64,000 nucleotides of DNA from Rebecca billardiae RCC1528 (taxonomy: Eukaryota > Protista > Haptophyta), in the NCBI GenBank assembly GCA_965240325.2, contig OZ251233.1:1488001-1552000 (forward strand), given 5' to 3'. Position numbers and translations under genes: made by a program. Below the pieces are notes generated by a model. It was not told the origin of the DNA and did not search any database. It saw only the letters and a list, made by a program, of their open reading frames with translations. Position 1 is the stretch's first letter. Each line of letters starts with the position of its first letter. Positions 955 through 60,672 of this stretch are shown piece by piece.

Positions 955-1815
955 TCAGGTCTGCAGCTGCGCATCGTCGTTCGCAGCCGCCCCGCGCGCG
1001 GCAGCACCGGCTGCCTCGCCGGCTGCTCCAGCCGCTGCATTTGGCGTCGCGGCTGGCTGTCCGGCGTCGCGGCTCGAGAAGGAGCCAATCGGCGGCAGCG
1101 GCGAGGTGGCGGAGGACGAGCGGCCGGTGGTGGGCAGGCTGGGCGGCGGGCCCGGCAGCGCGGACGCGGCCGGCAGTGGCGCCGCCGCGACGGGCTGCGG
1201 CAGCGCCGACGCCGTGCCCTCGCGCGCCACCGGCGGCAGCGCCGCCGGCGGCGCGCGTCGGATGGTCGGGTCGACGGGCGGCAGCGTGGCCGAGCCCCTT
1301 CGGGTGTCTGCGAGCGTGGGCGGCTGCCGCACCGACTCGACCGGCCCGGCCGAGGCCGGCGCGGCCCGGCTTGTGTCGGCGCGCGCGGGCGCGGGCGTCA
1401 CCGCCGCCGCGCCGGGCGGCGGCGGCGCCGGGCGCACGCGCTCGGCAGGCGGCGGCGGCGGCGGCTGCTGCTGGCCGGCGGGCGCGGACGGCGGGCCGTC
1501 CGCCGAATCGTCCCCGGGCGCGACCTGCGTGCGAGAGCTCCTCTTCGGCGAGCGGCTGAATCCCTGCCCAGCGGACGGCCCGGCAGAGCCGTCGCCCGTC
1601 GTCGCGGCGGCGCCGCCGACCCCGGCCTCGTCCTCGTCCGAGACGCGCACCTCTTCGACCACGCGCTTGCGCCGCCACCAGCCGAAGGCGCACAGGGCGG
1701 CGCAGCACAGCAGCGCCGCGATGGTCAGTCCGACGGACAGCCCGACTATGCTGCCCGTGTCCAGGGCCGGCTCGCTCGCCCTGGCGGCCGTCGCGCCGGA
1801 GGGAGCGCTTCCACT

Positions 1816-1848
<33 letters not shown>

Positions 1849-4800
1849 GCCGCCGGAGCTTGACGCGTCGCCGTCCTCGCCGCCGCCCTCGTCCGTGCCG
1901 GCTGTGTCCGCCACCTGCACGGCCGCAAGCGGGACGCCGACGGCGAGCGCGAGCGCGGAGAGCGGCGTGTTGCGCACGATGGCGGCGACGTCGATGTCGA
2001 GCGCGTGCGGCACGTACACCGCGACGATCAGCACCGTGCCGGCGGTGGGCAGCACCTTGAGAAAGCCCGGCTGCAGGCCGAGCAGCGCGCCGAGCCCGCT
2101 CACAAACTCGGCGCGGCTGGTGTCGTTGAGGCCCTGCTCCGTGTCGAGGGTGAAGATGAGAGTGGTCGTGAGCTCGCCGGGCGGCGAGGGCGGCGGCGCG
2201 AGCGGCGGCGTGGGCGAGGGCGGCGTGCTGGGCGGCGAGGGGCTCGGCGGCGGGCTCGGCGAGTGCGGCTCGCACGAGCTGTCGTCGAACGACGCCGTCG
2301 AGTCGAAGTTGGGCGCGACGGCGTCCGTGCACCCGCCAAACCGGCAGCCGCCCGAGTCGACCGTCGCTGCGGAGAGGAAGTTGGACGCGGCCGAGTCGGT
2401 GCAGCCGGTCACAGGGAAGACGCAGCTGCCGTCGTTCACGTCGGCGCTCGAGTCGTAGTTGCTCGCGTTCCGCAGCGTGCAGCCGCCGAGCACGCAGCTG
2501 CCGTCGTCGAGCGTGGCTGTGGCGGGAGGGAGGCACGCGCGCGCGGGCGAGGGGCGATGGGCGTCACGCACGGCGCGACGGGCGGGCGCGCGCGCGCGCG
2601 GTGCGCCGAAGGCGGCTGCGGTGCGCAGGGGCGCGCGCCGCACCTGCGGCGAGGTAGTTGATGGCGGCGCTGTCGGTGCAGCCGCGCACGTCGTACACGC
2701 ACGAGCCGTCGCTCGTCGTCCCTGCGTGCAGCCGTGTGCCACGCGGTGCGGGGCGCGTGCGCATGGCGCGGGCCGTGAGCGCGGCAGGGCGCGAGCGGCG
2801 GGCCTGCGGCTGGGCGGCGCGCGAGCGGCGGCGGCGGGGCGTGCGGCGCGGGGCGCGCACCGAGCGAGTCGAAGTTGATCGCGCTCGAGTCGACGCACGC
2901 CGCGCGCACGCAGCTGCCATCGTCGGCGTTCGCGGCGGCGGCGTAGTTGTCCGCGGCGCTGTCCGTGCAGCCGCGGACGCTGTACGAGCACGAGCCGTCG
3001 TTCGTCGTCGCGCTCGAGTCGAGGTTGTTGGCCGCCGGGTCGGTGCACCCGCCGTACGCGCACGGGCCGGCGACGGTGGCCTGCGGCACGAAGTCGAGCG
3101 CGAGCGAGTCGGTGCAGCCGGTGACAGGAAACTCGCACGAGCCGTCGTCGTCGGATGCGCCCGAGTCGTAGTTGAGCGCGCTCGGCACCGTGCAGCCCGA
3201 GCCCTGCAGCCGGCGGCCGCGGCGCGCGGCGCTCGCGTTCGCCGCCGTCGGGAAGGGGAGGCACTCGCCCGAGTCGACGGCCGCGGCCGGCAGGTAGTTG
3301 TACATGGTCGAGTCGGTGCAGCCCGCGAGCGCAAAGGCACACGCGCCCGCGCCGGGCTGCACAGTGGCGCTCGGGTCGAAGTTGGTCGCGGCCTCGAGCA
3401 GGCAGCCCGGGAAGGGCACGAAGCAGCTGCCGTCGTCCGCGCTGGCCTGCGGCACGTAGTTGAGCGCGCGCGAGTCGGTGCAGCCGCCGAACGTGTACGC
3501 GCACGCGCCCTGCGGCTGGCGCGTCGCGCTCGCGTTGAAGTTGGTCGCGGTCGGGTTCATGCAGCCCAGCACCTCCGCCACGCACGAGCCGTCGTCGGCC
3601 GTGGCGAACGACGCGAAGTTGAGCGCGGCCGGCGCGGTACAGCCGGGTACGGCGAACACGCACGCGCCCGCTGTCCCCGCGGAGGCCTGCACGGTCGCGG
3701 TCGGGTCGTAGTTGGTCGCGCCGGGCGCCATGCAGCCGAGCACAGCGATGAAGCAGCTGCCGTCGTCCCGCGTCGCCGCGGCCAGGTAGTTGACCGCCGC
3801 CGAGTCGGTGCAGCCCGGCGTCTCGTAGATGCACGCGGCCTTGGCGGTCGCCGCCGAGTTGTAGTTGAGGGCGGCTGGGTCGGTGCAGCCAAAGATGGGC
3901 GGCGGCGGCGCAGGCGGCGGCGCGGAGGGCGGCGGTGGCGAGGGCGAGTCCGGCGGCGGCGAGGGCGGTGGAGGCGAGGGAGGCGGCGGCGAGGGCGTGG
4001 GCGGCACGGGCGGTGAGCCAGGAGACATGGGCGGCAGCGGAGGCGGCGCCTGCGGGGGTGGCGGGGGCTCGCGCGGCGGTGTGGCCGGCGGCGTCGACGG
4101 TGGTGTCGACGGCGGCGCCGACGGCGGCGCCGACGGCGGCGCCGACGGCGGCGCCGACGGCGGCGCCGACGGCGGCGCCGACGGCGGCGCCGACGGCGGC
4201 GTCGATGGCGGCGTCGATGGCGGCATCGACGGCGGCATCGACGGCGGCGTCGACGGCGGCGCCGACGGCGGCGCCGACGGCGGCGCCGACGGCGGCGCCG
4301 ACGGCGGCGTCGATGGCGGTGCGAGCGGCTGCGGGCTCGGCGGCGGCGTGCTCGGCGGCGTTGATGGCGGCGAGAGCGGCGGCGGGCTCGGCGGCGGGCT
4401 CGGCGGCGGCGGGCTCGGAGGTGGCGGACTCGGAGGTGGCGAGCTAGGCGGTAGGCTCGGTGGCGGCGGTGGCGGCGGGGTCGGTGGTGGTGGCGGCGGG
4501 GTTGGTGGCGGTGGTGGCGGCGGGCTCGGTGGCGGCGGGCTCGGCGGCGGGCTGGGCGGCGGCGGCGGCGGTGGGCTGGGCGGCGGCAGGCTCGGCGGTG
4601 GGCTCGGCGGCGGCGGCGGCGGCGGCGACGGTGGTGGCGGGCTTGGCGGCGGGCTCGGCGGCGGCGGCGGCGGCGGGCTCGGCGGCGGTTGGCTCGGTGG
4701 CGGGCTCGGCGGCGGCGGCGGCGGCAGGCTTGGCGGTGGGCTCGGCGGCGGCGGCGGCGGTGCGCCCGGCGGCGAGCTCGGCGGTGGCGGCAGGCTCGGC

Positions 4801-27000: not shown

Positions 27001-30000
27001 CCCACCGCGGCGGCGCCGACCGCGCCGACCGCGCGCAGCGGCGCCACACCGTCCGCGCCGCCGGCGAGCGCGTGCGCGCACGCGCCCACGCCGGAGACGG
27101 CCGCCTCGCCGACATACTCGGGCGCGACGGAGTAGACAGAGGCGCCGCCGCGCTCGCCGCCGCACACCTGCGCCTCGTTCCCGCCGCACAGCGCGGCGCA
27201 CGTCGCGCCGTCGTCGTCGGCGGGGTTTCCGAACGGCGTCTTCTCGGTGCGCGAGCGGTAGGCCGGGTTGGCACACGCGCACAGCTTGTTGTTGCGCGTC
27301 GACTGCAGCGCGAACAGGGATGCACCCGCGCCGACGCAGAGCGCGTTGCACTCCTCGAGCGTCCACGGGTGCCCGCCGGACACCCCGCCCACGTACTCAC
27401 GGAACACCGCCACGTACCGCCGCGTCTTGGGCGGGAAGCCGCGAAGCACAGAGTCCTGCTCGGCGACGATTAAATCGCCGGTCTCGAAGCAGCCGGCGTA
27501 ATGTGGCCGCCACGCGGCAAAGGAGCCCCCGCAGCCCGCGGCCGCGCGGCCGCGCACGCGCACGCTGAGCTGCGGGCCCGGCGCGGGCATCACCACGTGC
27601 GCGTCGTCCAGCGGGAAGAGCCGCACGCCGCCGCTCGCCAGCACGGACACGGCCGCGGTCGGCTCGACCGCCGCCGCCGCGACCGAGCCCGGCGGCGGCG
27701 GCGTCAGGTGCGCGTACTCTGTGACGACGGCGGCGCGCGACGCGAGCGCGGGCGGCGTCGCGATCGCGCTCGCGTTCGCTGTGCCGTTGGTGCTCGCGTT
27801 CGCACCACCGCCCACCATCGGCGGCCCGTCGAGCCCGCCCTCGATCGCGGGCACGTACGCCCGCAGCCCGCTGGCGTTGGTGAGCACCAGCGCGCCGCCG
27901 TCGCCCGTGTCCAGACCGACGAGCTCCGCTTGGTAAGTGATGCCGCCGCTGGGTGTGCCGAGCCGGACGAGGTGCGGCGGCGTGCTGCCGACGGGCTGGA
28001 ACGCGCCGAACGCGGCGCGCGCGGGCTCGTCGCCCTCCTCGCCCAGCGCCCACGCCACGCGCGCCGCCTCGCCGCGCGACACCGCCGCCGAGTCGGCGGG
28101 CGCCCGCTCGAGAGACAGCTCGACCGCGCCGCGCGCGCACGTCTGCGCGCGCGCAATCGTCGCGAGCGCAATGTCCTGCTGCGAGCCGGCGCGGACGAGG
28201 CGGAGCGGCGGGAGCGGGCGGGCGTGCGAGCACTCGGGCTCGTGCAGCCGGAGCGCGAACGTCGTCTCCGCCACGCTGCTCTCGAGCGCCACCGCCTCGA
28301 CCTCCGTCACCGCCGGCCAGCCGGGGCCGGGGCCGTTGCCATCCGCGTCGGCCGCGTAGGGAAGGGCGCCGCCCTCGCGCGCGTCCGCGTCGGCGAGCTC
28401 GCGCGCGACGGTGGAGCGGCGCACGTGGAGCGGCGCGGTGGAGATCGCGAGGTCGTCGATCCACACCGCCCCGCGCATCGAGTCTTGCTCGCCGTACCGG
28501 TCGTGCATGTGCCGGTCGCTCGGCGCATCCAGGTAGACTGCGCAAAGGCACAAGCGCGCGCGCGCGCACGCGAGCGCGCGCCGGCCGCGAGGCGCGCGAG
28601 TGAGCGCGCGCAGGCGCGGAGGGGCGGGCGGAGGTGCGCGGGCGCGAGGCGGCGCGGCGCGGCGCGAAGGCGCGATCGGGCGCGCGCGCACATCCGAGCA
28701 CTTGGTGGTTGTTCGGCCCGTACGCCGCGTCCATCTGCGCGTCGAGGTCGATGCACTTGTGGTGCCAAGCACCGTCGTCTTGGACGGGCGCAAAGCTGGC
28801 CGCGCGCCGGTGCACGTTGGCGCCGCTCGAGTCGTCGTTGAGCTGGACGGAGGCCCAGTGCCAGCCGATCGAGCTGGCGGTGGAGGTGAAGATGAGCACG
28901 TTGCCCACCGCGCCCGGCTCCAGCCGATACGCCAGGCATAAGTACGGGTACTCGCTCGTACTAAACCCCTGCGTCGTCTGCGCGCCCTCGAGGCCCGACG
29001 GGTTCCACCAGCGGAAGTTCCGGCCGTACGAGCCGGCGACGACGCCCGCGCCGGCGGTGGACCAGGCGGGGGCGCCGCGCAGCGCGTACCGCCCGCAGAA
29101 CGCCTCGCGCGCGTCCGACACCGCCGGGTCGTTGTCGAACGTGCGCGCCCAGTCATCGGGGCCGCCCGGCCCCCCTTCGAACGTGTCCGCCTCCCACAGG
29201 CCGAGGCGCGCGTTGGGTGGGTAGGCCTTCCACTCGTTGGGCCGGCGCGGGTTGGGCGGCGGCAGCGGGCCGACGGCGTCGAGGGACGGACCGATCGGCA
29301 CCTCGAGCTGCGCGCCGGACTGCACGTCCACCAGCGTCGCCGACCACTCGCAGACCGGCTCGAAGAGCGAGCGCGCCGCGTCGGCGAGCTCGTGCGGACG
29401 AGCGTCTTTCGGCAGCGGCGCCGTTGTGCGGTTGAGCAGCGCGAGCGCGAGGCCGGAGGCGTTGGCGAGCGTGAGCGTCTGCACGTGCTCGTGCGCGAGC
29501 GCCGTGCCGAACGCGCCGACCAGCTCGTCGCCGCCCGCCGCGTCGAACCCGCCGGCCGCGCCCGCGCGCGCCAGCGCCAGCTGCACTCGGTGCGCGACGA
29601 CTGCGTCTCCGAGCCGGCGCACGCTCGCGCCGCCCGCCGGCACCTCGTGCAGCTGCAGGCCGAGGCGGGCGTAGTCCCAGCCGGTGGTGTCGGCGAACCA
29701 GAGGTCGAGCAGCACCCGCTCGCCCGCCGCGAGCCCGAGCCGCTCCTGCGCGCACGCCAGCCCCGCGTCCCAGCTCATCGACCCTGTCTGTGTCGTGCAC
29801 ACGGGCTCGTCGCCGCCCGCGACCGGCCCGGCGCCCGGCTCACCAAATGGGCGGGCGGGCGTGCCGACGAAGAGGACGGCGCGCTCGCTGGCGTGCATGT
29901 GGAGGGAGTAGTTGCCCGCGCGCGGCGCCTCGAACCAGCCCACCATCCGGCCGACGTAGTAGTCCTTGAAGTCGCTCCCCACCTTGGGCGGCCACGAGAA

Positions 30001-31098
30001 GGCACCCAGTGAGAGCACGGCGTCCGCGGCCGCGGCGCCGTCGTGCGCCGCCGAGTGCGCGCCGGCCACGTTCGCCGCGCGGCGGGTCTCCGCGAGCGCG
30101 GTGAGCGTGGCGAGCGAGTGCGACGGCTGCCCGTCGTACCGCTCAAAGCGCACGCCGCGCGCGCCGAGGTGCTGCCACCCGCCCGAGTACGGCGCCGGCT
30201 CGGGGTCGGCGGGCGCGTCGCCGACGACGCACTCGAACGAGCCAGCGGCCGGCCGGCCGGTGACGGCGCACGGGAGGTCGCCGACGCGCACGTCGAGGCC
30301 CGCCGCGTCGCCCGGCGGGAACCCCTCGCCGTGCACCGTCAGCGTCGCGCCGCCCTCCACGCTCGACAGCGCGGGCGTCACCGCCGACACGTGCGCGCGC
30401 ACGTCGAGCGCGTGGCCGCGCACCGGTAGCGCGCCAAACAGGTCGGGCGTGCGCGCGGCGGGGTGGAGCACGGCGTCGCCGTCGGCGCCGGCGGTGGAGA
30501 CGTTGTGCGGGCCGCCGACGAGCGGGCCGCTCGCGACGCACGTCGGCCCGTTCAGCGGGCCGAGCAGGTTGCCGTCTTCGTCGTACCGGCGGCACACGCG
30601 CCGGTCCGGCAAGTGCGCGCCGCCGACCGAGCCGCCGCGCCCGTCGTCGACGAGCGCCCACGCGTCGCCGGTGGAGCGCCGGCCGTTGAAGTGGACGAGC
30701 TCGCCCGCGCGCACGCTCGGCGAGCGGACGGCCGTCACGTTCGGCGTGACCGCCGCCTGGTACGTGTACGTGCACGCGCTCGACGTGTCGCGGCACGTCG
30801 CGGGCACGCCGTCGACGAGCACGGTCACGCCGACGTCGACGTCGTTGCCGGCGGCGAGCGGGTCGGGCAGCGGCGGCGTGGTGCAGACGAGCTGCGTCGT
30901 CGTCGACGAGAAGGTCTCGAGCGGGCATGGCGTCGGCCCGATGAACACGCTCGCGGGCGAGTACAGCGAGCCAAAGTTGGCGCCGCGGATGGTGAGCGAC
31001 TGCCCGCCCGCGCGCGAGCCGCGCGTGGCCGAGAGGTCGGTGATGACGGCGCCGGTCGCGCCGCCCACGAGCGCGCACAGCAAAAGCGCGCCGCGCAT
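955..31098 (-). CDS. Giant fibrocystin-L/PKHD1L1-like type-I membrane protein, 9,907 aa; exons 31098-28692, 28537-2861, 2721-2644, 2516-955
   Basis: Signal peptide MRGALLLCALVGGATG. Three GT-AG introns (28538-28691, 2722-2860, 2517-2643) join four ORFs in frame: 29,724 nt = 9,908 codons, with sensible junctions VLG-F-YLD, DSL-G-TTSDGSC and YLAA-A-TLDDGSC. Many IPT/TIG repeats; PA14-like region. G8 (WSRPTTWGGLAPPVEGDSVQIP) followed by beta-helix motifs (KYPVHFHMIG, GHTYFIEDAIETKN). A second G8 and the fibrocystin-L-type motifs DDCVSMDCDG, ESMDGDTETRSL and GGQDHGWCFGYTCLKRLSTF. TM IVGLSVGLTIAALLCCAALCAFGWW followed by RRKR at 1675-1749. Confidence 0.9.
2270..3893 (-). repeat. 17 tandem ~26-aa GCTDxxAxN(Y/F)xxxAxxDDGSC repeats (within giant CDS)
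   Basis: Counted in the spliced translation; each has two Cys and conserved N and DDGS residues. Confidence 0.9.
3897..7893 (-). repeat. Extensin/HRGP-like (SPPP)n stalk 2, ~1,330 aa (within giant CDS)
   Basis: GGCGGCGGGCTC-type 12/15-nt repeats on + encode SPPP/SPPPP, grading into PPSA/PPST near 4080-4380. Confidence 0.95.
7900..12680 (-). other. Cys-rich region of giant CDS: EGF, two furin-like (FU) repeat runs, 3 Myxococcus-type CGxG-x-E-x-CDDxN repeats, ~5 Ca-binding EGF domains
   Basis: CHxSCxxC..CxxC..CPxGxY repeats at ~11260-12580 and ~8460-9750. CGNGKRSSVEQCDDNNTLAGDGC-type repeats at ~9770-10192. CxDxDEC...CxNTxGSYxCxC at ~7900-8405. Confidence 0.88.
23885..25323 (-). repeat. Extensin/HRGP-like (SPPP)n stalk 1, ~480 aa, inserted in the IPT array of the giant CDS
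   Basis: Translation is almost pure S/A-PPP repeats. Confidence 0.95.
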
Positions 31099-48320: not shown

Positions 48321-51300
48321 ATGGGCAACTCAGAGTCGCAGGCCGTGCGCAACGTGGACAAGCGCACGGCGCGCCGCGACCACGCGCCCAAGTTCAAGCA
48401 GGCGATCGCGCGGTACCGCGTCGAGCACACGGACGAGGACGGCGTCGTCGCCGCCGAGCAGCCGCGTGTGGATGAGGCGGGGCGGCTGGGCGAGCGGCTG
48501 CGCGTGTGCGTGCGCAGGCGGCCCATCTTCGCGCACGAGGAGGAGGCGGGCGAGTTCGACGTGCTCAGCTGCTCGCGCACCTCGATCGTCGTGCACGACG
48601 GCCGGCTGCACCCGGACTGCCGCCACCTCTTCATCAGCCACCACGTCTTCGGCTTCGACCGCGTGTTCGACGAGCGCGCGTCGTCGGCGGACGTGTACGC
48701 CGACGCGGTCGCGCCGCTCGTCCGCGCGTGCGTGCACGAGCGCGCCCCCGCGTGCGTCCTCATGTACGGCCAGACCGGCTCGGGCAAGACGTTTACGACG
48801 CGCGGGTTGCTCGGCCTCGCGGCGGCGCAGCTGTTCGCAGAGGTGGGCGAGGGCGACGAGGTGAGCGTGGCGTACGCCGAGCTGGCGGGGCTCGGGATGC
48901 GCGACATGCTCAACGGCGCCGCGCCGTGCCAGCTCCTCACCGACCGCAGCGGCGAGGTGCAGGTCGTGCCTTCCCTGGAGGTCCCCGTCTCGGACGCGCC
49001 CGCGCTGCTCGCGCTCGTCGAGCTGTGCGTGGCGCTGCGCGCGACGGCGGCGACGGGGGTGCACGACGCGTCGTCGCGCTCGCACGCGTTCTGTCGCATC
49101 CACGTGCGCCGCGCCGGGCACCCGCCCGGCGAGTGCGGCTCGCTCACGCTGATCGACCTCGCGGGCTCGGAGCAGAGGATCGACACGGAAGCGCACACCG
49201 CGCGCCGCACCAAGGAGTCCGCCGCGATCAACTCGTCGCTGATGGCGCTGAAGGAGAGCGTGCGCGCGCTCTCGCGCGGGGAGGGGTGGCACACGCTCGC
49301 CGGCGGGCGGCACCCGCTCACCCAGCTCCTCCGCCCGTGCTTCACGCAGCCGCACGCGCGCAGCCTCGTGCTCGCGACGGTGTCGCCTTCCTCCAAGGAT
49401 ACGGAGCACGCGCTCAACACGCTGCGGCACGCGTCGCTCATGGACGGGCGCTCGGACGAGGGCGGCACGTCGTGGGTGGGCGGCGGCGAGGTGCGCCGGC
49501 AGGACATCGGCGAGATCGACATCCACGGCACCCAGGCCAAGCGGCGCGCCGAGGCGGAGGCGCTCGCCACGCGGCGCGACGGCGCGCCCAGGGGCGGCGG
49601 CGGCGGCGCCGACGACTCGATCGGCGCGAGCGCGGCGCAGGCGAGCGAGCGTCGGCGCGAGGCGCGCGCCGACGCGGCGGCGTTCAAGCGCGCCGAGCGG
49701 CAGGCGATGCGCGCGCTCAAGGCCGCCGCGCCCGAGCAGCTCGACGCGCTCCTCGCCGAGCGCGAGCGCGCCAGCGCCGGGCCCTCTCTGAATCGGTTCC
49801 AGGCGGCGCGCCTCACGTCGCGCGCGGCGAACGGGCCCTGGCCCGGCGGGAGCGGCGGCGGGCTGGCGCACGCGCGCGCCGAGGCGGGAGGCCGGGCGGC
49901 GGCGCGCGAGGTGCCGCCGCCGGGCGCCGACGACGAGCCGGACGAGTGGGCGCCCGGACCGCCCGGACGCGTGCCGCGCGCGCCGCCGCCCAAGCACGCG
50001 CCGCGCCGCGGCAGCAGCGTCGACATCGCCACCGACGCCGCCGCCCTTTGCGAGCCGGGTGGCGGCTCAGCCGAGGACGAGGACGACTGGACTGGCCTAG
50101 CCGCTGCGGGTGCGACGGACACGCGGCGGCGCGGCGCGGACGCGCGGGCGACGCGGCCGCCCGTGGACCCGGCAGAGCGCCGCGCCGGACCTTCGGCCGC
50201 CTCGCGCCGTGCGCACGCCGCCGCCGCCGCCGCGGCCGACGCCTCTTCCGCCGCCGCTGCTGGCTTCCGCCATGCTGATGCCGACCAGAGCGAGCACTGG
50301 GGTGCAGGCGGCGGCGGTGGCTGGGGCGGCAGCGGCGGCGGTGGCTGGGGCGGCGGCCGCGAGCGCGGGGGGCCGCGCTCAGAGGCGCACGCCTCCGCGG
50401 CGGCTGGGCTTGGGTTTGGCGCGGCCGCGGCGACGCGCGCGTCGACGGCCGTCGCCCGGTTCGGCCGCCGCGCCACGCCACCGACCTCCGGAGACTCAGC
50501 GCACGGCGGGGCGGACTGGGGCGACGCCGGCGGAGCTGAGAGCGGCACCGAGCTCGATGGCTCGGACGAGGGGGCCTGGTGGCACGGCGCTCGGCGCGCC
50601 GCGGGCGACAGTCGCCCGCCCTCGCGGCCACCCTCTGGTCTGTCCTCACGCGAGCGCGCCGCCGCCCACGGCCGGCGCGCCGCCGCGGCCTCGGCTGGGG
50701 CCTCCGGTGCGGACACGCCGCGTGCTGGCTGTGGCGGTGGGGCCGGGAGCGTCGGCACATCGCGCGGCGGGACGCCGCGCGGCGGTGGCGGTGGCGCGGC
50801 CGCGGGGCGGCCGCCGCCCGCGCCCGTCGCCGCGCCGAGGCACGCCGCCGCCCCTTTGCCCGCATCGCCCTCGGCCGCAGCCGCCGCCGCAGCCGCCGCC
50901 GCCGACCCCGTCTCTCCTGGGAGCAGCCAGATACAATCTCGGCTGGAGGCGGCGAGAGCGCGGCGCGAGGCGCTCGAGCGCGCGCGGCGCGAGCAGCTGC
51001 TGCGGCGGCAGGGCAGCAGCGGTGGGAGCGGCGGCGCGCTCGCGGCCGCCGGCCCCGCCTCGGCGGCGGCGGGTGGCGCAGACGAAACCAGCATGGCCGC
51101 CGCTACCGCGCCGCCTGACCATCGCGCGGAGCTGGCGCGGCTGCAGGCAGCGATCGACGCGCTGCCGCGCACGCGCGTGCACGACGCCGCGCGCGCAGGG
51201 CTCACCCGCCAGCGTGACGTGCACCGCGCCGCTCTCCTGCGCGAGCGGCGGCGCGCGGAGCAGGCTAGTCGCGCGGCCGCGGCCGGCCACGTCCCTGCCT

Positions 51301-51680
51301 CGGCCGCCGCGGCCGGCGGCGTGAGCGGCGCGCCGAGCGGCACGCCGAGTGCACCCGCGCGCGAGCCGGACGCGGAGCCGCGCGCGCGATCGCCGCTGGG
51401 CCCGCTGAATGGCGCGGCGGATCTGGCGCGCGAGCCGTCGCCCGCGCGCGCGCCGCTGAGCGCGGCCGACGCGACGGCGCCCTCACGCTCAGGCGTGCGC
51501 AAGCCGACCCGCCGCGTCGTGCGCGACTTTGACGCGGCCGAGTCGGACGAGGTGAGCGTGCGCGTCGACGACCACGTGGACGTGCTCGCCGACGATGGCG
51601 ACTCGGCGTGGGTGGAGGTGCGGCACATGCGCACGGACGAGCTCGGCCTGCTGCCGCGCGAGTGCATCGCCGGGCTGTGA
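48321..51680 (+). CDS. Kinesin-13-like motor protein with N-myristoylation motif and C-terminal SH3 domain (1,119 aa)
   Basis: RVCVRRRPI, P-loop GQTGSGKT, switch I SSRSH, switch II LIDLAGSE, ESAAINSSLMALKE, LATVSP..DTEHALNTLRHA. N-terminus MGNSES. C-terminus VVRDFDAAESDEVSV..DHVDVL..AWVEVR..GLLPRECI. Confidence 0.92.
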   Translation: MGNSESQAVRNVDKRTARRDHAPKFKQAIARYRVEHTDEDGVVAAEQPRVDEAGRLGERLRVCVRRRPIFAHEEEAGEFDVLSCSRTSIVVHDGRLHPDCRHLFISHHVFGFDRVFDERASSADVYADAVAPLVRACVHERAPACVLMYGQTGSGKTFTTRGLLGLAAAQLFAEVGEGDEVSVAYAELAGLGMRDMLNGAAPCQLLTDRSGEVQVVPSLEVPVSDAPALLALVELCVALRATAATGVHDASSRSHAFCRIHVRRAGHPPGECGSLTLIDLAGSEQRIDTEAHTARRTKESAAINSSLMALKESVRALSRGEGWHTLAGGRHPLTQLLRPCFTQPHARSLVLATVSPSSKDTEHALNTLRHASLMDGRSDEGGTSWVGGGEVRRQDIGEIDIHGTQAKRRAEAEALATRRDGAPRGGGGGADDSIGASAAQASERRREARADAAAFKRAERQAMRALKAAAPEQLDALLAERERASAGPSLNRFQAARLTSRAANGPWPGGSGGGLAHARAEAGGRAAAREVPPPGADDEPDEWAPGPPGRVPRAPPPKHAPRRGSSVDIATDAAALCEPGGGSAEDEDDWTGLAAAGATDTRRRGADARATRPPVDPAERRAGPSAASRRAHAAAAAAADASSAAAAGFRHADADQSEHWGAGGGGGWGGSGGGGWGGGRERGGPRSEAHASAAAGLGFGAAAATRASTAVARFGRRATPPTSGDSAHGGADWGDAGGAESGTELDGSDEGAWWHGARRAAGDSRPPSRPPSGLSSRERAAAHGRRAAAASAGASGADTPRAGCGGGAGSVGTSRGGTPRGGGGGAAAGRPPPAPVAAPRHAAAPLPASPSAAAAAAAAAADPVSPGSSQIQSRLEAARARREALERARREQLLRRQGSSGGSGGALAAAGPASAAAGGADETSMAAATAPPDHRAELARLQAAIDALPRTRVHDAARAGLTRQRDVHRAALLRERRRAEQASRAAAAGHVPASAAAAGGVSGAPSGTPSAPAREPDAEPRARSPLGPLNGAADLAREPSPARAPLSAADATAPSRSGVRKPTRRVVRDFDAAESDEVSVRVDDHVDVLADDGDSAWVEVRHMRTDELGLLPRECIAGL

Positions 51681-51997: not shown

Positions 51998-52077
<80 letters not shown>
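51998..52077. repeat. (AT)~40 microsatellite
   Basis: Direct reading of the sequence. Confidence 0.97.
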
Positions 52078-52081
<4 letters not shown>

Positions 52082-52548
52082 ATAATGTTTTTATTTTCGC
52101 CGCCACGCGCTCGATGACGACTCGCAGACTCGACGACTCACTGAGTCGACTGGTTAGCTAGTAAAAACGGCGGCAAGCAAGTTATTGGGACGTCGCGTTT
52201 TGTTGCGCACGACTGCTGTATTTTCTAGAAACGGATGTCATGACGGATGAAGATCGGCGCCCGGGGCCCGTTCACGGCGGGCCGTTGCGCACGTCCGTTG
52301 GACTCTGTTGCGACGATGCCGGATGGCGTGCGGTCAGGCACGGTCGTGCGGCGCAGCAGAGAGCAGAAGGATGGCGACCCGGGCGAACAATGGACACGAA
52401 TGACGCCGCCTGCGGCCTCGAATGGTATGGGCGGCATGCGCGTGGCTGCTTCGACGGATCGAGTTCAGAATGATGGGCACAGATAGGCAGTGTGCAAGGG
52501 AGCGAGCAGGGGACAGTGCGCTTGCAAGGCAGCGCGGCCGCGCAGCAC

Positions 52549-55500
52549 TCAGCCGATGATCTTCTTCGGCCGCGCTGCTCCCAGGCCGGTGCTCGGCCCG
52601 CTCCCGGACCCGCCACTCGGGGGTAGCCGAGGCGGAGGCGTAGGCTTAGGGAGGGGTTTCGGTGCCGCCTTGGGCGGCGGCGGTGGTGGCGACGGTGGTG
52701 GCGGCTTAGGCGCCGGCTTCGGCGGCGGCGGCGGTGGCGGCTTTGGCGGCGGTGGTGGCGGCGGCTTCGGCGCCGGCTTCGGCGGCGGCGGCGGTGGTGG
52801 CTTCGGTGCCGGCTTCGGCGGCGGTGGCGGTGGCGACTTTGGCGGCGGTGGTGGCGGCGGCTTCGGCGCCGGCTTCGGCGGCGGCGGAGGTGGCGGCTTT
52901 GGTGCCGGCTTAGGCGGTGGCGGCTTTGGCGCCGGCTTTGGTGGTGGCGGCGGCGGTGGCCTCTTCGCCGGCGCCGCGCCTGATGTGATCACACGCTTGG
53001 CGCGTGCCCCGCCCAGGTTGAAGAGCGAGCCACCCGCGGGCTTGGCCGGCGCGGGCTTGGCGCGGGGCGGCAGCGCCACACGCTGCGCCGGCGTGCGCAC
53101 GATCGAGCGCACGGGCGGCAGCGGGCCCGGTGGCGGCTTCGCCACCGGCTTGGGCGGCGGCGGCGGAGGCGGCAGCCGGCGTGGTGGCGGCGGTGGCGGC
53201 GGCTTGCGAACCGGCTTTGGCGCCGGCTTGGGCGGCGGCTTACGCGCAGGCGGCTTTGGAGCCGCCTTCGCCGCCGGCTTGCTCGCCGGCTTCGCCCCGA
53301 ACAGCGAGCCGAAGAAGGACGGCTGCGGCGCGGACGGCGGCTTGGCCACCGGCTTGGGCGGCGGCGGCGGCGCCTTCACGATGGCACGCACCGGCGGCGG
53401 CGGCGGCGGCTTGGGCGCCGGCTTGGGCGGCGGCGGCTTCGCCACCACCTTTGGCGGCGGCGGCGGCGGCGGCTTGCGCACCGGCTTGGGCGGCGGTGGC
53501 TTCGCAACCACCTTTGGCGGCGGCGGCGGCGGCGGCGGCCGACGCACGACAGCTGGTGGCGGCCGCGCCCCGGGCGCCGTGATCACCTTGCGCGTGCGTG
53601 CGCCGCCCAGGCCAAACGCAGAGGTGCCCGCCGGCTTGGACGGCGTGGGCGACGCGCGCGGCGGCAGCGCCACACGCTGTGCCGGCGTGCGCACGATCGA
53701 GCGCACGGGCGGCAGCGGGCCCGGCGGCGGCTTCGCCACCGGCTTGGGCGGCGGCGGCGGCGGCGGCAGCCGGCGTGGCGGCGGCGGCGGCGGCCGGCGC
53801 ACCGGCTTGGGTGGCGGCTTGGGCGCCGGCTTGGGCACCGGCTTGGGCGCCGGCTTGGGCGCCGGCTTGGGCGCCGGCTTGGCCGCCGGCTTCGCCCCGA
53901 ACAGCGACTCGAAGAAGGACGGGCGCGGCGCGGACGGCGGCTTGGCCACCGGCTTGGGCGGCGGCGGCGGCGCCTTCACGATGGCACGCACCGGCGGCGG
54001 CGGTGGCGGCTTGGGCGCCGGCTTGGGCGGCGGCGGCTTCGCCACCACCTTTGGCGGCGGTGGCGGCGGCGGCGGCTTCACCACCGGCTTCGGCGGCGGC
54101 GGCTTGACCGCCACCGGCTTGGGCGGCGGCGGCCGCGCCCCGGGCGCCGTGATCACCTTGCGCGTGCGTGCGCCGCCCAGGCCAAACGCAGACGTGCCCG
54201 CCGGCTTGGACGGCGTGGGCGACGCGCGCGGCGGCAGCGCCACACGCTGCGCCGGCGTGCGCACGATCGAGCGCACGGGCGGCAGAGGACCCGGCGGCGG
54301 CTTCGCCACCGGCTTGGGCGGCGGCGGCGGCGGCGGCCGGCGCACCGGCTTGGGCGCCGGCTTGGGCGCCGGCTTCAGAGCCGGCTTGGCCGCCGGCTTC
54401 GCCCCGAACAGCGAGCCGAAGAAGGACGGGCGCGGCGCGGACGGCGGCTTGGCCACCGGCTTGGGCGGCGGCGGTGGCGCCGGCTTCACAATCGTTCGCA
54501 CCGGCGGCGGCGGCGGCGGCGGCTTGGGCGCTGGCTTGGGCGGCGGCGGCTTCGCCACGAGCTTGGGAGGCGGCGGCGGCGGCGGCGGCTTGGGCACCGG
54601 CTTGGGCGGCGGCGGCGCGGCCACGATCGGCTTGGGCGGCGGCGGCGGCGGCGGCGCGCGGGGCGGCGGTACCGGCGACGCCGTGATCACCTTGACGTTG
54701 CGAGCGCCGCCGATGGGCCCGCCGAAGCTGAAGGGCGACGGGCGCGATTTGGGCGCGGGCGTGCGCGGCGCAGGGCGCGCGGGGCGGGGCGCGACGGGCG
54801 CGGACGTGCGCACCGCCGCCCGCACAGGGGCGAGGCGCGGCCCGGACGGCGGCGGCGGCGGCGGGCTGAAGAAGGACGGCGGCAGCCTGATCTGCCCCTC
54901 CGGCGGCGGCGGCGGCTTGCCGATGTACACGGGCGGACCCGACGGCGGCGGCGGCGCAGCCTTGCGAGCGGGCGGCGGCGAGCGCGGAGCAAGCGTTGCG
55001 CGCTGCGCCGGCGCACGCACAATCGAGCGCACGGGCGGCAGCGGGGCCGGCGGCGGCTTCGCCACCGGCTTGGGCGGCGGCGGCGGCCGGCGCACCGGCT
55101 TCGGCGGCGGCTTCCGTGCGGGCTTCGCCGCCGGCTTCGCCCCGAACAGCGAGTCGAAGAAGGACGGGCGCGGCGCGGACGGCGGCTTGGCCACCGGCTT
55201 GGGCGGCGGCGGCGGCGCCTTCACGATGGCACGCACCGGCGGCGGCGGTGGCGGCTTGGGCGCCGGCTTGGGCGGCGGCGGCTTCGCCACCACCTTTGGC
55301 GGCGGCGGCGGCGGCGGCGGCTTCACCACCGGCTTGGGCGGCGGCGGCTTGACTGCCACCGGCTTGGGCGGCGGCGGCCGCGCCCCGGGCGCAGTGATCA
55401 CCTTGCGCGTGCGTGCGCCACCCAGGCCAAACGCAGAGGTGCCCGCCGGCTTGGACGGCGTGGGCGACGCGCGCGGCGGCAGCGCCACACGCTGCGCCGG

Positions 55501-57594
55501 CGTGCGCACGATCGAGCGCACGGGCGGCAGCGGGCCCGGCGGCGGCTTCGCCACCGGCTTGGGCGGCGGCGGCGGCGGCGGCAGCCGGCGTGGCGGCGGC
55601 GGCGGCGGCGGCCGGCGCACCGGCTTTGGCGCCGGCTTGGGCGGCGGCTTGGGCGCCGGCTTCAGAGCCGGCTTGGGCGCCGGCTTCGCCCCGAACAGCG
55701 AGTCAAAGAAAGACGGGCGCGGCGCGGACGGCGGCTTGGCCACCGGCTTGGGCGGCGGCGGCGGCGCCTTCACGATGGCACGCACCGGCGGCGGCGGTGG
55801 CGGCTTGGGCGCCGGCTTGGGCGGCGGCGGCTTCGCCACCACCTTTGGCGGCGGCGGTGGTGGCGGCGGCTTCACCACCGGCTTCGGCGGCGGCGGCTTG
55901 ACCGCCACCGGCTTGGGCGGCGGCGGCTTGACCGCCACCGGCTTGGGCGGCGGCGGCCGCGCCCCGGGCGCCGTGATCACCTTGCGAGTGCGTGCGCCGC
56001 CCAGGCCAAACGCAGAGGTGCCCGCCGGCTTGGACGGCGTGGGCGACGCGCGCGGCGGCAGAGCCACACGCTGCGCCGGCGTGCGCACGATCGAGCGCAC
56101 GGGCGGCAGCGGGCCCGGCGGCGGCTTCGCCACCGGCTTGGGCGGCGGCGGCGGAGGCGGCAGCCGGCGTGGCGGCGGCGGCGGCGGCGGCCGGCGCACC
56201 GGCTTGGGTGGCGGCTTGGGCGCGGGCTTGGGCGCAGGCTTGGGCGCCGGCTTGGGCGCCGGCTTCAGAGCCGGCGTGCTCGCTGGCTTAGGCGCGAACA
56301 GCGAGTCGAAGAAGGACGGGCGCGGCGCGGACGGCGGCTTGGCCACCGGCTTGGGCGGCGGCGGCGGCGCCTTCACGATGGCACGCACCGGCGGCGGCGG
56401 TGGCGGCTTGGGCGCCGGCTTGGGCGGCGGCGGCTTCGCCACCACCTTTGGCGGCGGCGGTGGTGGCGGCGGCTTCACCACCGGCTTGGGCGGCGGCGGC
56501 TTGACCGCCACCGGCTTGGGCGGCGGCGGCCGCGCCCCGGGCGCCGTGATCACCTTGCGAGTGCGTGCGCCGCCCAGGCCAAACGCAGACGTGCCCGCCG
56601 GCTTGGACGGCGTGGGCGACGCGCGCGGCGGCAGCGCCACACGCTGCGCCGGCGTGCGCACGATCGAGCGCACGGGCGGCAGCGGGCCCGGCGGCGGCTT
56701 CGCCACCGGCTTGGGCGGCGGCGGCGGCGGCGGCTTCGGCACCGGCTTGGGCGGCGGAGGTGGTGGCGGGGCGCGGCGGGGCGGCGGTGGCGGCTTGGGC
56801 GCTGGCTTGGGCGGCGGCGGCTTGGCGACCACCTTGGGCGGCGGTGGCGGCGGTGGCGGCTTGGGCGCAGGCTTGGGCGCCGGCTTCAGAGCCGGCGTGC
56901 TCGCTGGCTTAGGCGCAAACAGCGAGTCGAAGAAGGACGGCTGCGGCGGCGACGGCGGCTTGGCCATCGGCTTGGGCGGCGGCGGCGGCGGCTTGGCCAC
57001 CGGCTTGGGCGGCGGCGGCGGCGCCTTCACGATGGCACGCACCGGCGGCGGCGGCGGCGGCGGCGGCTTGGGCACCGCCTTGGGCGGCGGCGGCGGCGGC
57101 TTCACCACCGGCTTCGGCGGCGGCGGCTTGACCGCCACCGGCTTGGGCGGCGGCGGCCGCGCCCCGGGCGCCGTGATCACCTTGCGAGTGCGTGCGCCAC
57201 CCAGGCCAAACGCAGACGTGCCCGCCGGCTTGGACGGCGTGGGCGACGCGCGCGGCGGCAGCGCCACACGCTGCGCCGGCGTGCGCACGATCGAGCGCAC
57301 GGGCGGCAGCGGGCCCGGCGGCGGCTTCGCCACCGGCTTGGGCGGCGGCGGCGGCGGCGGCTTCGGCACCGGCTTGGGCGGCGGAGGTGGTGGCGGGGCG
57401 CGGCGGGGCGGCGGTGGCGGCGGCTTCGCCACCGGCTTGGGCGCCGGTGGAGTCGCGGGCTTGGGAGCAAAAAGCGAGTCGAAGAGCGACGGCTGCGGCG
57501 GCGACGGCGGCTTGGCCACCGGCTTGGGCGGTGGCGGCGGCGGCTTGGCCACCGGCTTGGGCGGCGGCGGCGGCGCCTTCACGATGGCACGCAC

Positions 57595-57625
<31 letters not shown>

Positions 57626-57661
57626 GGCTTGGGCGGCGGCGGCTTCAGGACAACCTTTGGA

Positions 57662-57694
<33 letters not shown>

Positions 57695-59185
57695 TTCACC
57701 ACCGGCTTGGGCGGCGGCGGCTTGACCGCCACCGGCTTGGGCGGCGGCGGCGGCGGCGGCGGCGCCGGCAGCGCCCTCGGCGCAGGCTTGGCCATCGGAG
57801 CTGTGATCACCTTCACCTGACGCGCACCGCCGAGCTTCAGACCCGCGGGCGGCTTGGGCGGCGGCGGCTTGGGCGGCGGCGGCAGCGGCTTGGGCGGCGG
57901 CGGCGCGCGGCGCACGACCGGCTTGGGCGGCGGCGGCGGCGGCGGCTTGGGCGGCGGCGGCTTGGGCGGCGGCGGCGCGGCGCGCAGCACCGGCTTGGGC
58001 GGCGGCGGCGCCGGCTTGGGCGGCGGCGGCTTGGCCACGATCTTCGGCGCGGCAGGCGCGCTGCTGCGCGGGCCGAAGAGCGAGTCGAGGAACGACGGGG
58101 CCGGCGCACTCGGTGGCGGCGCTGCCTTGAGCACCGGCTTGGGCGGCGGCGGCGGCGGCGGCTTGGGCGGCGGCGGCTTGGGCGGCGGCGGCGCGGCGCG
58201 CAGCACCGGCTTGGGCGGCGGCGGCGCCGGCTTGGGCGGCGGCGGCTTCGCCACGATCTTCGGCGCGGCAGGCGCGCTGCTGCGCGGGCCGAAGAGCGAG
58301 TCGAGGAACGACGGGGCCGGCGCACTCGGTGGCGGCGCTGCCTTGAGCACCGGCTTGGGCGGCGGCGGCGGCGGCGGCTTGGGCGGCGGCGGCTTGGGCG
58401 GCGGCGGCGCGGCGCGCAGCACCGGCTTGGGCGGCGGCGGCGCCGGCTTGGGCGGCGGCGGCTTGGCCACGATCTTCGGCGCGGCAGGCGCGCTGCTGCG
58501 CGGGCCGAAGAGCGAGTCGAGGAACGACGGGGCCGGCGCGCTCGGCGCACGCACCGGTGGCGGCGTGGGCGGCGGCGGCACGCGCACGGGCGGCGGCGGC
58601 GGTGGCTTGATCACGAGCTTGGGGCGAGCCGGCAGCGGCGGCGGCGGCGGCGGCTTGGCCACGGGCTTGGGCGGCGGCGGCTGGCGCAGGATCGGTTTGG
58701 GCGGCGGCGGCGGGGGGGGCGGCCGGGCCGCGGCACCGGCCGACGGCTTGCCGATCACCTTGACCGTGCGCGGGGCCCCAAGCTTCTGACCGAAGCCCGC
58801 CGTCGGGGCGGCGGGGCCTGTCGGCGTCGTGGGCGGCGGCGGCGGCGGCCGCGGCGCCAGCAGGCCTTGGCGGGGCGGCAGCGGCACCGGAGTGATCGGC
58901 TTCAAGCGCGACACGGGCCTGGCCGGTGGCGGCGGCGGCGGAGCAGGCGGCGGCGGCGCGGCAGGCGGCGGCGGCGGCGGCGGCGGCAGCGGCTTGGGTG
59001 GCGGCGGTGTCGGGCGGATGGTCAGCTTGGGCGGCGGCGGCGGCGGCGGCGGCACCTTCACAGGCGGCGGCGGCGGCGGCGGCCGGATGGCAAGCTTGGG
59101 CGGCGGAGGCGGCGGCGGCGGAGGTGTGGCCTTGGGCTGCGAGGCGCCACCGCCAAAGAGCCCGCCGAAGAGCGGTGGCGGCGGT

Positions 59186-59218
<33 letters not shown>

Positions 59219-59647
59219 GGCTGCGGAGCACCGCCGCCGAAGAGCCCGCCGAAGAGCGGTGGCGGCGGCGAGGCAGGCGGCTTGGGCGCAGGCGCCGGCT
59301 TGGGCGGCGGCGGCGGCGCTCGGATGGCCAGCTTGGGCGGCGGCGGCGGCGGCGGCGGCTTCTTCACCGGCGGCGGTGGCGGCGGCCGGATGGCAAGCTT
59401 GGGCGGCGGCGGCGGCGGCGGCGGCACCTTCACAGGCGGGAGCGGCGGCGACTTGCGCACGGCGACCTTGGGCGGCGGCGGCGGTGGCGGCGGCGGCGGC
59501 GGCGACGGCTTGGGCGGCGGCGGCAGCGAAATCTTGGGCACCTGGACCTTCGGAAGCTCGACCTTGGGCGGCTTGAACTCGGGCACCTTGATCTCGGGCA
59601 CCTTGATCTCGGGCACCTTGATCTCGGGCACCTTCAGCGTCGGCGGC

Positions 59648-59694
<47 letters not shown>

Positions 59695-60672
59695 AACCGG
59701 CGCGGCGCCCGAGCGCGGCTCGGCGGCCTTGGTCAGGGCGTCATCAATCTCGTTAATCCGCTTGGCGATGTTCCCGGTGACCGAGTCGGAGAGGTCCTGC
59801 ACCGCGTCCTTCGCCGCGTCGGCGAGCTTCTCCGGCGCCTCCTGGATGCTCTTCGCCACGCGGCCGGGCGTCGCCGCGATGTCCTCCTTCAGCTTCTCCG
59901 TCGCGCGGCGTGCCTGGTCCTGTGCTTCGGCAACCTTCCGACCGGGAAGCGTCACGATCTCGTCGACCGTGCGCTGCACGCTGGACTTGACGGCGTCGCC
60001 CGCCTTCTGCGCGATGCCCGTGGCGGTGCCCGCCGCGGCGTTTCCTGCAGCCTTCGCCGCCTTCGCCGCGAGCCCGCCCACGTCCACCTTCGGCAGCTCG
60101 GGCGGCGGAGGGCGCGGCGGCTTGGGCGGCGGCGGCGGCGGCGGCGGCGGCGCGACCGGCGCTGGCGGCGGCGGCGGCGGCGGCGCCGGCTTGGGCGGCG
60201 GCGACGCCGGGCTCGGCGGCGGCGAGGTCGGGATCGTCACAGGGGGCGGCGGCACAACCGTCACCGGCTCCACCGGTGGTGGTGGTGGTGGCGGCGGCGG
60301 CGGCGGCGGCGCCACGGGCGCCGGCGCCGGCGCCGCAACGGGCGGCGGCGGCGACGGCGGCGGCGGCATCGGCGTGACAGGCGGCGGCAGCGGCGTGGGC
60401 TTGGGCCGCGGTGCGATCGGCGGGGGCAGAGGGGTGGACCCCGCCGGGGCCGGCGACCCCGACTTGGGCTCCTCGTCATCGGCGCCGGCCGAGGCGTCGT
60501 CGAGGCCGTTTGATGAGAGGACCACCGGCGGGCGCGTGCGCGCGACACGGCGTCGCGCGCCAAGGAGCGACGAGGCGGACGGCCCGGGCTTGGATGGGTT
60601 CACCAGACCCACCGACAGCTCGGCGCACGCGAGGAGGCCGAGCAGGAGCGCAAGCGCGCCCCGCTGCCCCAT
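52549..60672 (-). CDS. Pro/Lys-rich repetitive disordered protein (2,707 aa) with signal peptide + transit-peptide-like N-terminus
   Basis: Single 8.1-kb ORF with ATG at 60672. Hydrophobic leader MGQRGALALLLGLLACAELSVG followed by an Arg/Ser-rich acid-free segment. Amphipathic helical block, (VPEIK)n, and higher-order repeats with FFDSLF and GGARxxKVIT motifs. Confidence 0.85.
52980..58540 (-). repeat. Higher-order coding repeats: eight units of roughly 0.6 kb, plus three 216-nt units
   Basis: GATCACCTTGCG-containing block near 53580, 54150, 55396, 55975, 56548 and 57175. CGAGTCGAGGAACGAC at 58081, 58297 and 58513 (216-nt period). Confidence 0.9.

Follow-up and report, generated by a model that had tools for sequence, protein, structure and literature searches.

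The window analysed here is a stretch of 64,000 nucleotides from the haptophyte Rebecca billardiae RCC1528 (assembly GCA_965240325.2, contig OZ251233.1, positions 1,488,001 to 1,552,000). Its minus strand encodes a protein of 2,707 residues, the focal protein, in which two kinds of short motif, or sticker, recur between long spacers of proline and lysine. The head of the focal protein is homologous to a family of diatom proteins with plastid leaders, and the focal protein itself is probably imported into the plastid. Within the plastid it may well act as a multivalent tether or scaffold, and this function is proposed with moderate confidence. Import is judged likely because of the homology of the head to the diatom family and the comparison with other leaders encoded in the same genome. 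A tether or scaffold is preferred over a linker of Rubisco because of the length and stiffness of the spacers, the length of the protein, the membrane- or lipid-type character of the conserved head and the existence of pyrenoid-less pavlovophytes. The gene and the parts of its product, apart from the stickers, are as follows.

52549..60672, minus strand: complete single-exon coding sequence of 2,707 codons plus stop (open reading frame (ORF) list, translation, coding GC3 pattern, single copy).
60607..60672, minus strand: signal-peptide-like N terminus, residues 1-22, with n-region MGQRG, h-region ALALLLGLLACA and c-region ELSVG (direct reading).
60502..60606, minus strand: transit-peptide-like stretch, residues 23-57 (35 residues, no Asp or Glu, 6 Ser, 5 Arg, 5 Pro, net charge +6).
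60469..60501, minus strand: acidic patch DDASAGADDEE, residues 58-68, the probable start of the mature protein (translation).
60088..60468, minus strand: first proline rod, residues 69-195 (translation).
59713..60087, minus strand: helical 'ATPG-repeat' head, residues 196-320, 125 residues (HMMER, BLASTP, hhalign and profile matches).
59518..59640, minus strand: PEVK-like (VPEIK)n / LPKVx stretch, residues 345-385 (translation; collinear with the diatom (LPKVE/VPKIx)n).

The focal gene is real and exceeds what chance or the noise of mirror-image ORFs would produce, as judged by its length, coding pattern, third-position variation and homology. Its ORF runs without interruption from 60699, with the first ATG at 60672 and the stop at 52549-52551. 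At about 80% G+C, a random ORF is expected to reach about 110 codons by our own arithmetic, compared with the 2,707 found. The G+C content of the window is 72-87%, an extreme that fits the Pavlovales, for which 73% has been published in Diacronema lutheri (PMC8379373). In the non-repetitive helical head, the G+C contents of the first, second and third codon positions (GC1/2/3) are 0.745/0.546/0.908 in the focal frame, resembling the 0.795/0.651/0.914 of the adjoining kinesin gene, and the two shifted frames do not have this pattern. Copies of a motif differ from one another at third positions when the codons are read in the minus frame (TCG/TCC/TCT, CTC/CTT/CTG, TTC/TTT), and the ATG, the leader and the homologues are found in the minus frame only. 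The gene is present in a single copy, since the coding patterns of the head and of motif A occur elsewhere in the genome only as chance-level near-matches. Opposite the proline codons lies a Gly-rich mirror ORF of 1,776 codons (52490-57820, plus strand), which shows how antisense ORFs in this genome can appear coding. Because this ORF also reaches a GC3 of 0.895, GC3 cannot pick the strand inside the repeats, and the strand was chosen by the head, by the start codon, by homology and by the variation at third positions.

The source assembly comprises 72 Mb in 41 contigs and encodes FCP-type light-harvesting proteins, and its plastid contig carries form ID-type rbcL and rbcS. On these two grounds the source is a red-lineage alga. 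The focal protein consists of 44.0% Pro, 11.9% Ala, 10.2% Lys, 5.4% Arg and 4.2% Ser, with Asp and Glu together making up 1.6%. Its net charge is +381; Trp is absent, and Cys and Tyr occur once each. It contains 128 runs of at least four prolines, the longest of up to 18. The DNA of its first proline rod resembles hundreds of further poly-Pro stretches in the genome. The head is moderately amphipathic (hydrophobic moments, muH, of 0.4-0.6). It reaches 18.8 bits against the Pfam family Apolipoprotein A1/A4/E (PF01442), and a relative of it, P0004, reaches 29.1 bits, both below the curated cut-off of 90 bits; this match is best read as a likeness in helix periodicity only.

The head is the sole part of the protein with detectable homologues. 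With the head alone as the query, an exhaustive HMMER (phmmer) search of 1.84 billion representative proteins gave an E-value of 1.2e-4 and two real relatives. The first, P0002, is a protein of 1,353 residues from Skeletonema, the cluster of which includes KAK1744258.1 of S. marinoi, annotated as 'hypothetical protein'. The second, P0004, comes from metagenomes and is a short form of 413 residues without the SANTA-like beta domain described below. P0003, from the same search, was rejected as a repeat artefact. A search started from P0002 added about 17 family members from Chaetoceros debilis, Striatella, Nitzschia and environmental data, none of them named; KAK1744258.1 (= P0005/P0002) and A0A7S3V8V1 of Chaetoceros debilis serve as examples of the family. 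With BLASTP, the head matches P0002 at 3e-12 over 214 columns, and the alignment stays collinear from the head into the Pro stretch and on to the LPKV repeats (VELPK..PKI.LP). The alignment of the focal head with the diatom family profile by hhalign has a probability of 98.8% and an E-value of 8.4e-17, and the diatom profile, when run on the genome, finds the focal gene at 8.8e-14. The focal protein itself was absent from the proteins covered by the exhaustive search with the head, and the gene therefore seems to be missing from public protein predictions.

Other searches contributed little. A word-index protein search with residues 196-336 found no match among proteins of 0.55-1.75 times the query length, and the sole match to residues 1-345, P0001, was an unrelated low-complexity protein. 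Such searches are blinded because poly-Pro words dominate them. ESM Atlas searches with the focal N terminus and with P0004 gave no usable match, and a metagenome scan with the head gave no relative. The literature searched yielded nothing on the diatom family, on a SANTA-like domain or fold inside plastids, or on proline-rich plastid proteins of haptophytes. The first-pass annotation, which was made from the DNA alone, had called the protein undescribed, and the term is apt, because Pfam has no family for it, none of its relatives is named and no paper on it was found.

The diatom proteins follow a common plan. First comes the leader, then a stretch of Lys and Pro, and then a hydrophobic hairpin that is rich in Gly. 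The hairpin precedes a series of 22-residue helices, which ATPG(K/R) punctuates. Next come PxPP, a (LPKVE/VPKIx)n stretch and long E/K/A/R helical stretches. The tail consists of repeating units in which T.SLFGLGG precedes a 55-residue beta domain, which is often followed by GGLFGLFG. The focal protein shares the tandem 22-residue helices with their invariant ATPG(K/R) punctuation, the subsequent PxPP and (LPKVE/VPKIx)n (the Pro stretch and its LPKV/VPEIK repeats), a probable bipartite leader and a Lys-rich, low-complexity tail, and motifs of the SLFGLGG and GLFGLFG types recur in the tails of the diatom proteins. Specifically, GGLFGLFG and GGLFGGLFGG occur in the diatom relatives and GGLFGG in a paralogue from this alga, which may be compared with the PLFGGLFGG of the focal protein. 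The diatom proteins differ in possessing the hairpin before the head, spacers that are helical and rich in E/K/A/R, and two to five SANTA-like beta domains of six strands, whereas the focal protein uses Pro/Lys rods as spacers and is 1.5-3.5 times longer. The hairpin, with its conserved PP turn and FGGP, is not present in the focal protein, in which the segment before the head is rich in Ala, Lys and Gly and is not hydrophobic. A profile search of the whole focal genome for the beta domain (APRGVPTI..W..DGSI.G..SGS.YFL) was likewise empty.

The beta domain recurs in the diatom proteins, for instance at P0031:765-825 and P0019:596-660, and AF2 predicts for it a confident six-strand fold with a pLDDT above 94 over residues 46-101. 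In the PDB it is matched best by the SANTA domain of M18BP1 (9r6h_A), with a Foldseek probability of 0.99 but an E-value of 0.08, and one diatom member touches Pfam SANTA at an E-value of 0.032. A sequence search of the PDB with the domain found nothing significant. The alignment used excludes the row P0029:645-761. A SANTA-like identity is a consistent lead, albeit a weak one.

A paralogue of the focal gene was found with the diatom profile at locus L072 (G000:C5:59419-62676), on the minus strand at approximately positions 1100-3150 of the locus. It has three exons and encodes about 600 residues. Its product has the Gly-rich hydrophobic hairpin as well as the ATPG helices and follows the diatom plan more closely than the focal protein does. 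It also carries KRVKRVISAP, which is similar to motif B, and five GGLFGG-type motifs in spacers of Lys, Pro and Ala. Its signal peptide is followed by a transit-like stretch that ends in ASAVSM, the same ending as in the FCP transit peptides of this alga. Together, the two genes indicate that the alga possesses both a giant form and a short, diatom-like form.

The first-pass annotation had interpreted the N terminus of the focal protein as a signal peptide followed by a Ser/Arg-rich, acid-free stretch, the bipartite leader of red-lineage plastids. A signal-peptide-like region (residues 1-22) and a stretch of 35 acid-free residues behind it are present, and the comparison with other leaders agrees with this interpretation. 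Three groups of FCPs in this alga have leaders of the forms ..ALA/FNGPAMRAP.., ..AVA/FNGPAMRAP.. and ..SLA/FNGPAPRP.., where the slash denotes the cut. The leader of PRK is ..ASA/YSAVSRSALRR.., with Tyr at +1, and that of PsbO is ..AGA/LKSGPARSAF.., with Leu at +1. In these plastid proteins, 20-27 acid-free residues rich in S/A/R/P follow the cut, compared with 35 in the focal protein. In contrast, the secretory controls, namely calreticulin, the TIG-domain fibrocystin-like protein of the window and several C1 peptidases, have Asp or Glu within about 0-12 residues. Among the aligned diatom relatives, 14 of 15 begin with a signal peptide and continue with Phe (in one case Trp) at +1 and a transit stretch rich in Ser and Thr. 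When P0018 and P0021 are added, the count is 16 of the 17 members read, the exception being P0016, which begins inside its leader. The diatom relatives likewise become acidic directly after the transit-like part. In two further groups of light-harvesting complex (LHC) proteins of this alga, L041 and L049, no obvious Phe follows the signal peptide of the leader (e.g. ..SLALLDPINPPPSRSK..), from which it appears that the rule of Phe at +1 is looser here than in diatoms.

These comparisons also bear on the main alternative, which is that the focal protein is secreted as a Pro/Lys-rich matrix protein, similar to proline-rich proteins and extensins, of the cell covering, the scales or the flagellar surface. 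The proline runs would then be hydroxylated, the polycation would glue acidic polysaccharides and the Phe motifs would cross-link or pack. The signal peptide, the 44% Pro with its 128 long runs and the lack of a membrane anchor are all compatible with secretion, as is a genome with hundreds of poly-Pro coding stretches. The absence of a glycosylphosphatidylinositol or transmembrane anchor follows from a C terminus without a hydrophobic tail. Like the extensins and other hydroxyproline-rich glycoproteins, the focal protein combines a signal peptide with long runs that form polyproline-II and with Lys-rich Pro repeats. Unlike them, it has essentially no Ser-Hyp4 modules or Tyr cross-link motifs. 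Ser-(Hyp)3-5 is not the dominant repeat, since SPPP occurs 9 times versus 73 for KPPP, the 2,707 residues include a single Tyr and a single Cys, and there is no usable density of N-glycosylation sites. Moreover, the transit-like stretch is unlike the secretory controls, the head has its homologues among diatom proteins whose leaders are of the canonical plastid type, and the transit peptide of the paralogue ends like those of the FCPs. Secretion is therefore considered unlikely. A cytosolic reading, based on motifs of the formin FH1, WH2, FFAT-like and clathrin-box types, was rejected because a signal peptide is present and no matching domain was found.

The sticker-and-spacer layout that the first-pass annotation described is real, and its motif counts were accurate: 11 copies of motif A, two of PLFGGLFG and 11 of motif B, with the last copy of motif B forming the C terminus. 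Motif A, P-[SL]-[FL]-[FL]-[DEG]-S-L-F, is typified by PSFFDSLF, and a degenerate copy, PPSFFSPP, occurs once. Motif B, G-[GA]-[AP]-R-x2-3-[KR]-[VI]-I-[TG], mostly follows F/L-G/N-L and is typified by FGLGGARxxKVIT. These elements are located as follows.

59149..59259, minus strand: two PLFGGLFGG motifs, residues 472-480 and 500-508 (translation).
52552..58797, minus strand: sticker array with Pro/Lys spacers, residues 626-2707 (motif list, unit comparison, tandem-repeat structure).
57917..58545, minus strand: three near-identical units of 72 residues (216 bp), each with PSFLDSLFG (TRF: period 216, 2.9 copies, 99% matches).
57169..57219, minus strand: example of motif B, TSAFGLGGARTRKVITA, residues 1152-1168 (translation).
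56914..56940, minus strand: example of motif A, PSFFDSLFA, residues 1245-1253, a predicted short helix (AF2).
52552..52599, minus strand: C-terminal B-type motif GPSTGLGAARPKKIIG, followed by the stop (translation).
Residues 715, 787, 859, 1061, 1245, 1452, 1653, 1836, 2082, 2251 and 2451, minus strand: starts of motif A.
Residues 632, 948, 1158, 1367, 1558, 1751, 1988, 2166, 2356, 2554 and 2698, minus strand: starts of the core of motif B.

In the array, gaps of 72-152 residues separate motifs A and B from motif to motif (mean 98.4, s.d. 20.1), and from residue 859 to residue 2554 the order A-B-A-B is strict over 18 motifs. Phenylalanine is nearly confined to the stickers: 43 of the 46 Phe residues lie inside the motifs and two more in the degenerate copy of motif A. 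The spacers consist of Pro runs interrupted by short Lys/Val elements (KVVAK, VRAIVKA, KLAIR). When one unit was modelled with AF2, no tertiary fold was obtained (pTM 0.14), and the sole secondary structure in the sticker region was a short helix on FFDSL of motif A (unit residues 138-142).

The history of the array must be considered when interpreting this regularity. The six core units are 86-91% identical, which indicates that the array is young and homogenised, and the edge units are 64-77% identical. The strict alternation follows trivially from the tandem duplication of a unit that contained one A and one B. The tail could be a runaway expansion of low-complexity sequence without specific binding, or the gene could be silent, and the motifs would then persist only through youth and homogenisation by unequal crossing-over. 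The near identity of the core units and of the three 216-bp units (99%) is consistent with such an expansion, as is the absence of the gene from public protein sets. On the other hand, a frame of 8.1 kb has remained open, with variation at third positions. The diverged edge units retain both motifs with conservative changes only (F/L, D/E/G, G/A) and several synonymous codons, and similar FG motifs are found in the paralogue and in the diatoms. Such an expansion, or a silent gene, is very improbable.

A further possibility, raised in the first-pass annotation by analogy with EPYC1 and PYCO1, is that the focal protein is the Rubisco linker of this alga. Motifs A and/or B would then bind form ID Rubisco and condense the matrix of a pyrenoid, as PYCO1 does in Phaeodactylum. 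Rubisco linkers are a functional class and not a homologous family. PYCO1 has two alternating aromatic stickers, an isoelectric point of 10 and a plastid leader; one of its stickers binds RbcS and the other self-associates (PMC10288592, PMC13655443). Like PYCO1, the focal protein comes from a red-plastid alga and has a plastid-type leader, a very high positive charge, a chain that is mostly unfolded and aromatic residues confined to alternating stickers in tandem repeats (PMC10288592). In PYCO1, there are six repeats of about 80 residues, the stickers are built on W and Y (KWSPR, GTGYNP) and the composition is prion-like. In the focal protein, a repeat is about 200 residues long, the stickers are built on F, Pro makes up 44% and the total length is about 2,700 residues. 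No sequence similarity between them was seen, and Rubisco is a candidate partner only. What EPYC1 and CsLinker share with the focal protein is a basic, unfolded chain of repeats in which the short stickers are helical (PMC13655443), the helix of motif A being a prediction. They are green-lineage proteins of about 300 residues, with simple transit peptides, 5-6 stickers and spacers of about 50 residues, and are not homologous to it.

For the class as a whole, the analogy with EPYC1 and PYCO1 stands with respect to the sticker-and-spacer layout, that is, a basic, unfolded chain along which short stickers recur (24 in number; net charge +381, pTM 0.14). It does not extend to the spacers, which are stiff Pro/Lys rods averaging 98.4 residues (72-152) instead of flexible segments of roughly 50-80 residues that are matched to neighbouring Rubisco sites, and the protein is 4-8 times longer than known linkers (PMC13655443, PMC10288592). 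In addition, a pyrenoid is not visible in some pavlovophytes (PMC5853415), and the conserved part of the family is the membrane- or lipid-type head and not the stickers. A role as a Rubisco linker is therefore quite unlikely. In its favour, haptophytes and centric diatoms still lack a known linker, which for the centric diatoms is an acknowledged gap (bioRxiv 10.1101/2023.10.26.564148; PMC13655443). A broader proposal is that the focal protein and its diatom relatives are the missing organisers of Rubisco or the pyrenoid matrix in those red-plastid algae, haptophytes and centric diatoms, that lack PYCO1. They would be membrane-anchored, rod-spaced tethers with a membrane-seeking head, and their Phe/Gly motifs would tie Rubisco or the pyrenoid shell to the traversing thylakoids. 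Both the proposal and this mode of action are improbable on present evidence and are offered as speculation.

Based on these comparisons, the preferred explanation is a tether or scaffold that acts within the plastid. The first-pass annotation is borne out in part: its interpretation of the leader, its sticker-and-spacer layout and the term undescribed are supported, and its condensate and its Rubisco, membrane or lipid-globule partners are candidates only. The nucleus-encoded protein would enter the endoplasmic reticulum (ER) via its signal peptide, and the transit-like stretch would then pass it into the complex, red-lineage plastid. The mature protein would comprise about 2,650 residues and represent an undescribed, plastid-targeted family common to diatoms, which would be defined by Pro-punctuated amphipathic helices of 22 residues (V.ETVEEIKATPGKVADAA-type) and a subsequent PEVK-like stretch. 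In this alga, tandem duplication would have turned the tail into a polycationic rod of Pro and Lys about 2,100 residues long, which may measure up to about 0.6-0.7 micrometre if it is entirely polyproline-II. Along this rod, two kinds of Phe/Gly-based sticker alternate about 100 residues apart; motif A would form a helix of 1.5 turns and motif B an FGLGG turn followed by a basic, beta-strand-like KVIT. The head may sit on a plastid membrane or lipid surface, and the cationic rods may lie along or between anionic surfaces. The periodic aromatic stickers would make many weak contacts, either with each other or with a partner, and in this way organise a sub-compartment of the plastid.

Two other groups of proteins provide physical analogies. 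The Glu-Pro/Lys-Pro rod of TonB and the PEVK region of titin are rigid or elastic Pro-rich spacers, and in the focal protein the Lys-Pro and VPEIK-type repeats are likewise expected to form polyproline-II rods or springs that span a set distance. The likeness is compositional only, since there is neither a C-terminal TonB domain nor the Ig/Fn3 context of titin. In the GLFG-type FG domains of nucleoporins (Nup98/Nup100), which are cytosolic or nuclear, the motifs are 10-20 residues apart and separated by uncharged polar linkers. There, as in the focal protein, cohesive Phe-Gly motifs (LFGGLFGG, FGLGG) are the sole hydrophobic elements of an unfolded chain. The focal protein differs in its spacing of about 100 residues, its highly cationic linkers and its leader.

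Several observations weigh against a tether or scaffold inside the plastid. With 44% Pro and runs of up to 18 prolines, the protein has a composition typical of the secreted rod proteins of algae, a kind that is abundant in this genome, and the acid-free stretch is less striking given that Asp and Glu make up only 1.6% of the whole protein. The hydrophobic moments of the head lie mostly under the classical boundary for surface-seeking helices. The function of the focal protein may have changed, because the hairpin and the SANTA-like beta domains of the diatom proteins are absent. When the profile of the diatom repeat unit was compared with that of the focal unit, the match was not significant (FSLFGLGG/SAFGLGGAR, 12 columns, probability 1%). 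The likeness between motifs A and B and the FG motifs of the diatoms is thus one that is seen by eye only, and the order of elements is alike, FG motif-bead-FG motif in the diatoms and B-rod-A in the focal protein. Lastly, the cut of the signal peptide is ambiguous. If it falls after SVG, the +1 residue is Leu, as in PsbO; if it falls after ACA (residue 17), the +1 residue is Glu, and the paralogue has His at this position. ASAFind has F, Y, W or L at +1 as a hard-wired criterion, and in diatoms the absence of these residues is the clearest mark of periplastidial proteins (PMC12136025). By the diatom rule, Glu or His would point to the periplastidial compartment and not to the stroma.

The protein might accordingly possess a bipartite leader and still halt in the periplastidial compartment or the lumen of the chloroplast ER. 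There it would serve as a spacer or tether between the outer pairs of plastid membranes, a role that a rigid, cationic rod might suit. This outcome is improbable, considering the Leu that the SVG cut would expose, the Phe at +1 of the diatom relatives, which signifies full import, and the apparent looseness of the rule in the two LHC groups mentioned above.

Some further features of the window were recorded. The focal gene adjoins a gene for a kinesin motor protein (48321-51680, plus strand). The kinesin is 1,119 residues long and has an SH3 domain at its C terminus, and an antisense ORF of 1,188 codons overlies its gene. About 470 bases 3' of the focal stop, there is a perfect (AT)39 microsatellite (52000-52077) in surroundings of about 75-80% G+C. 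An ORF of 8,906 codons (2436-29156, minus strand) overlaps the ORF of the TIG/IPT-domain, fibrocystin-like protein (27397-31098, minus strand), which has a plain signal peptide. The longer reading begins in an Arg/Ala-rich frame with a non-coding look, and the gene model needs work.

Haptophytes have no known Rubisco linker, thylakoid spacer or comparable scaffold of this internal kind, and the focal gene is a concrete candidate. The absence of this gene from public protein sets indicates that annotation pipelines miss this class of protein in very GC-rich genomes. Additionally, the gene leads to a conserved family of plastid-targeted proteins in diatoms that has never been studied and is tractable for tagging and knockout in model species. 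If import into the plastid is confirmed, the focal protein would be an unusually long and proline-rich cargo to cross the four plastid membranes. The same head would then carry two spacers that are physically similar and chemically different, helical rods with beta beads in the diatoms and polyproline rods with linear motifs in this alga.

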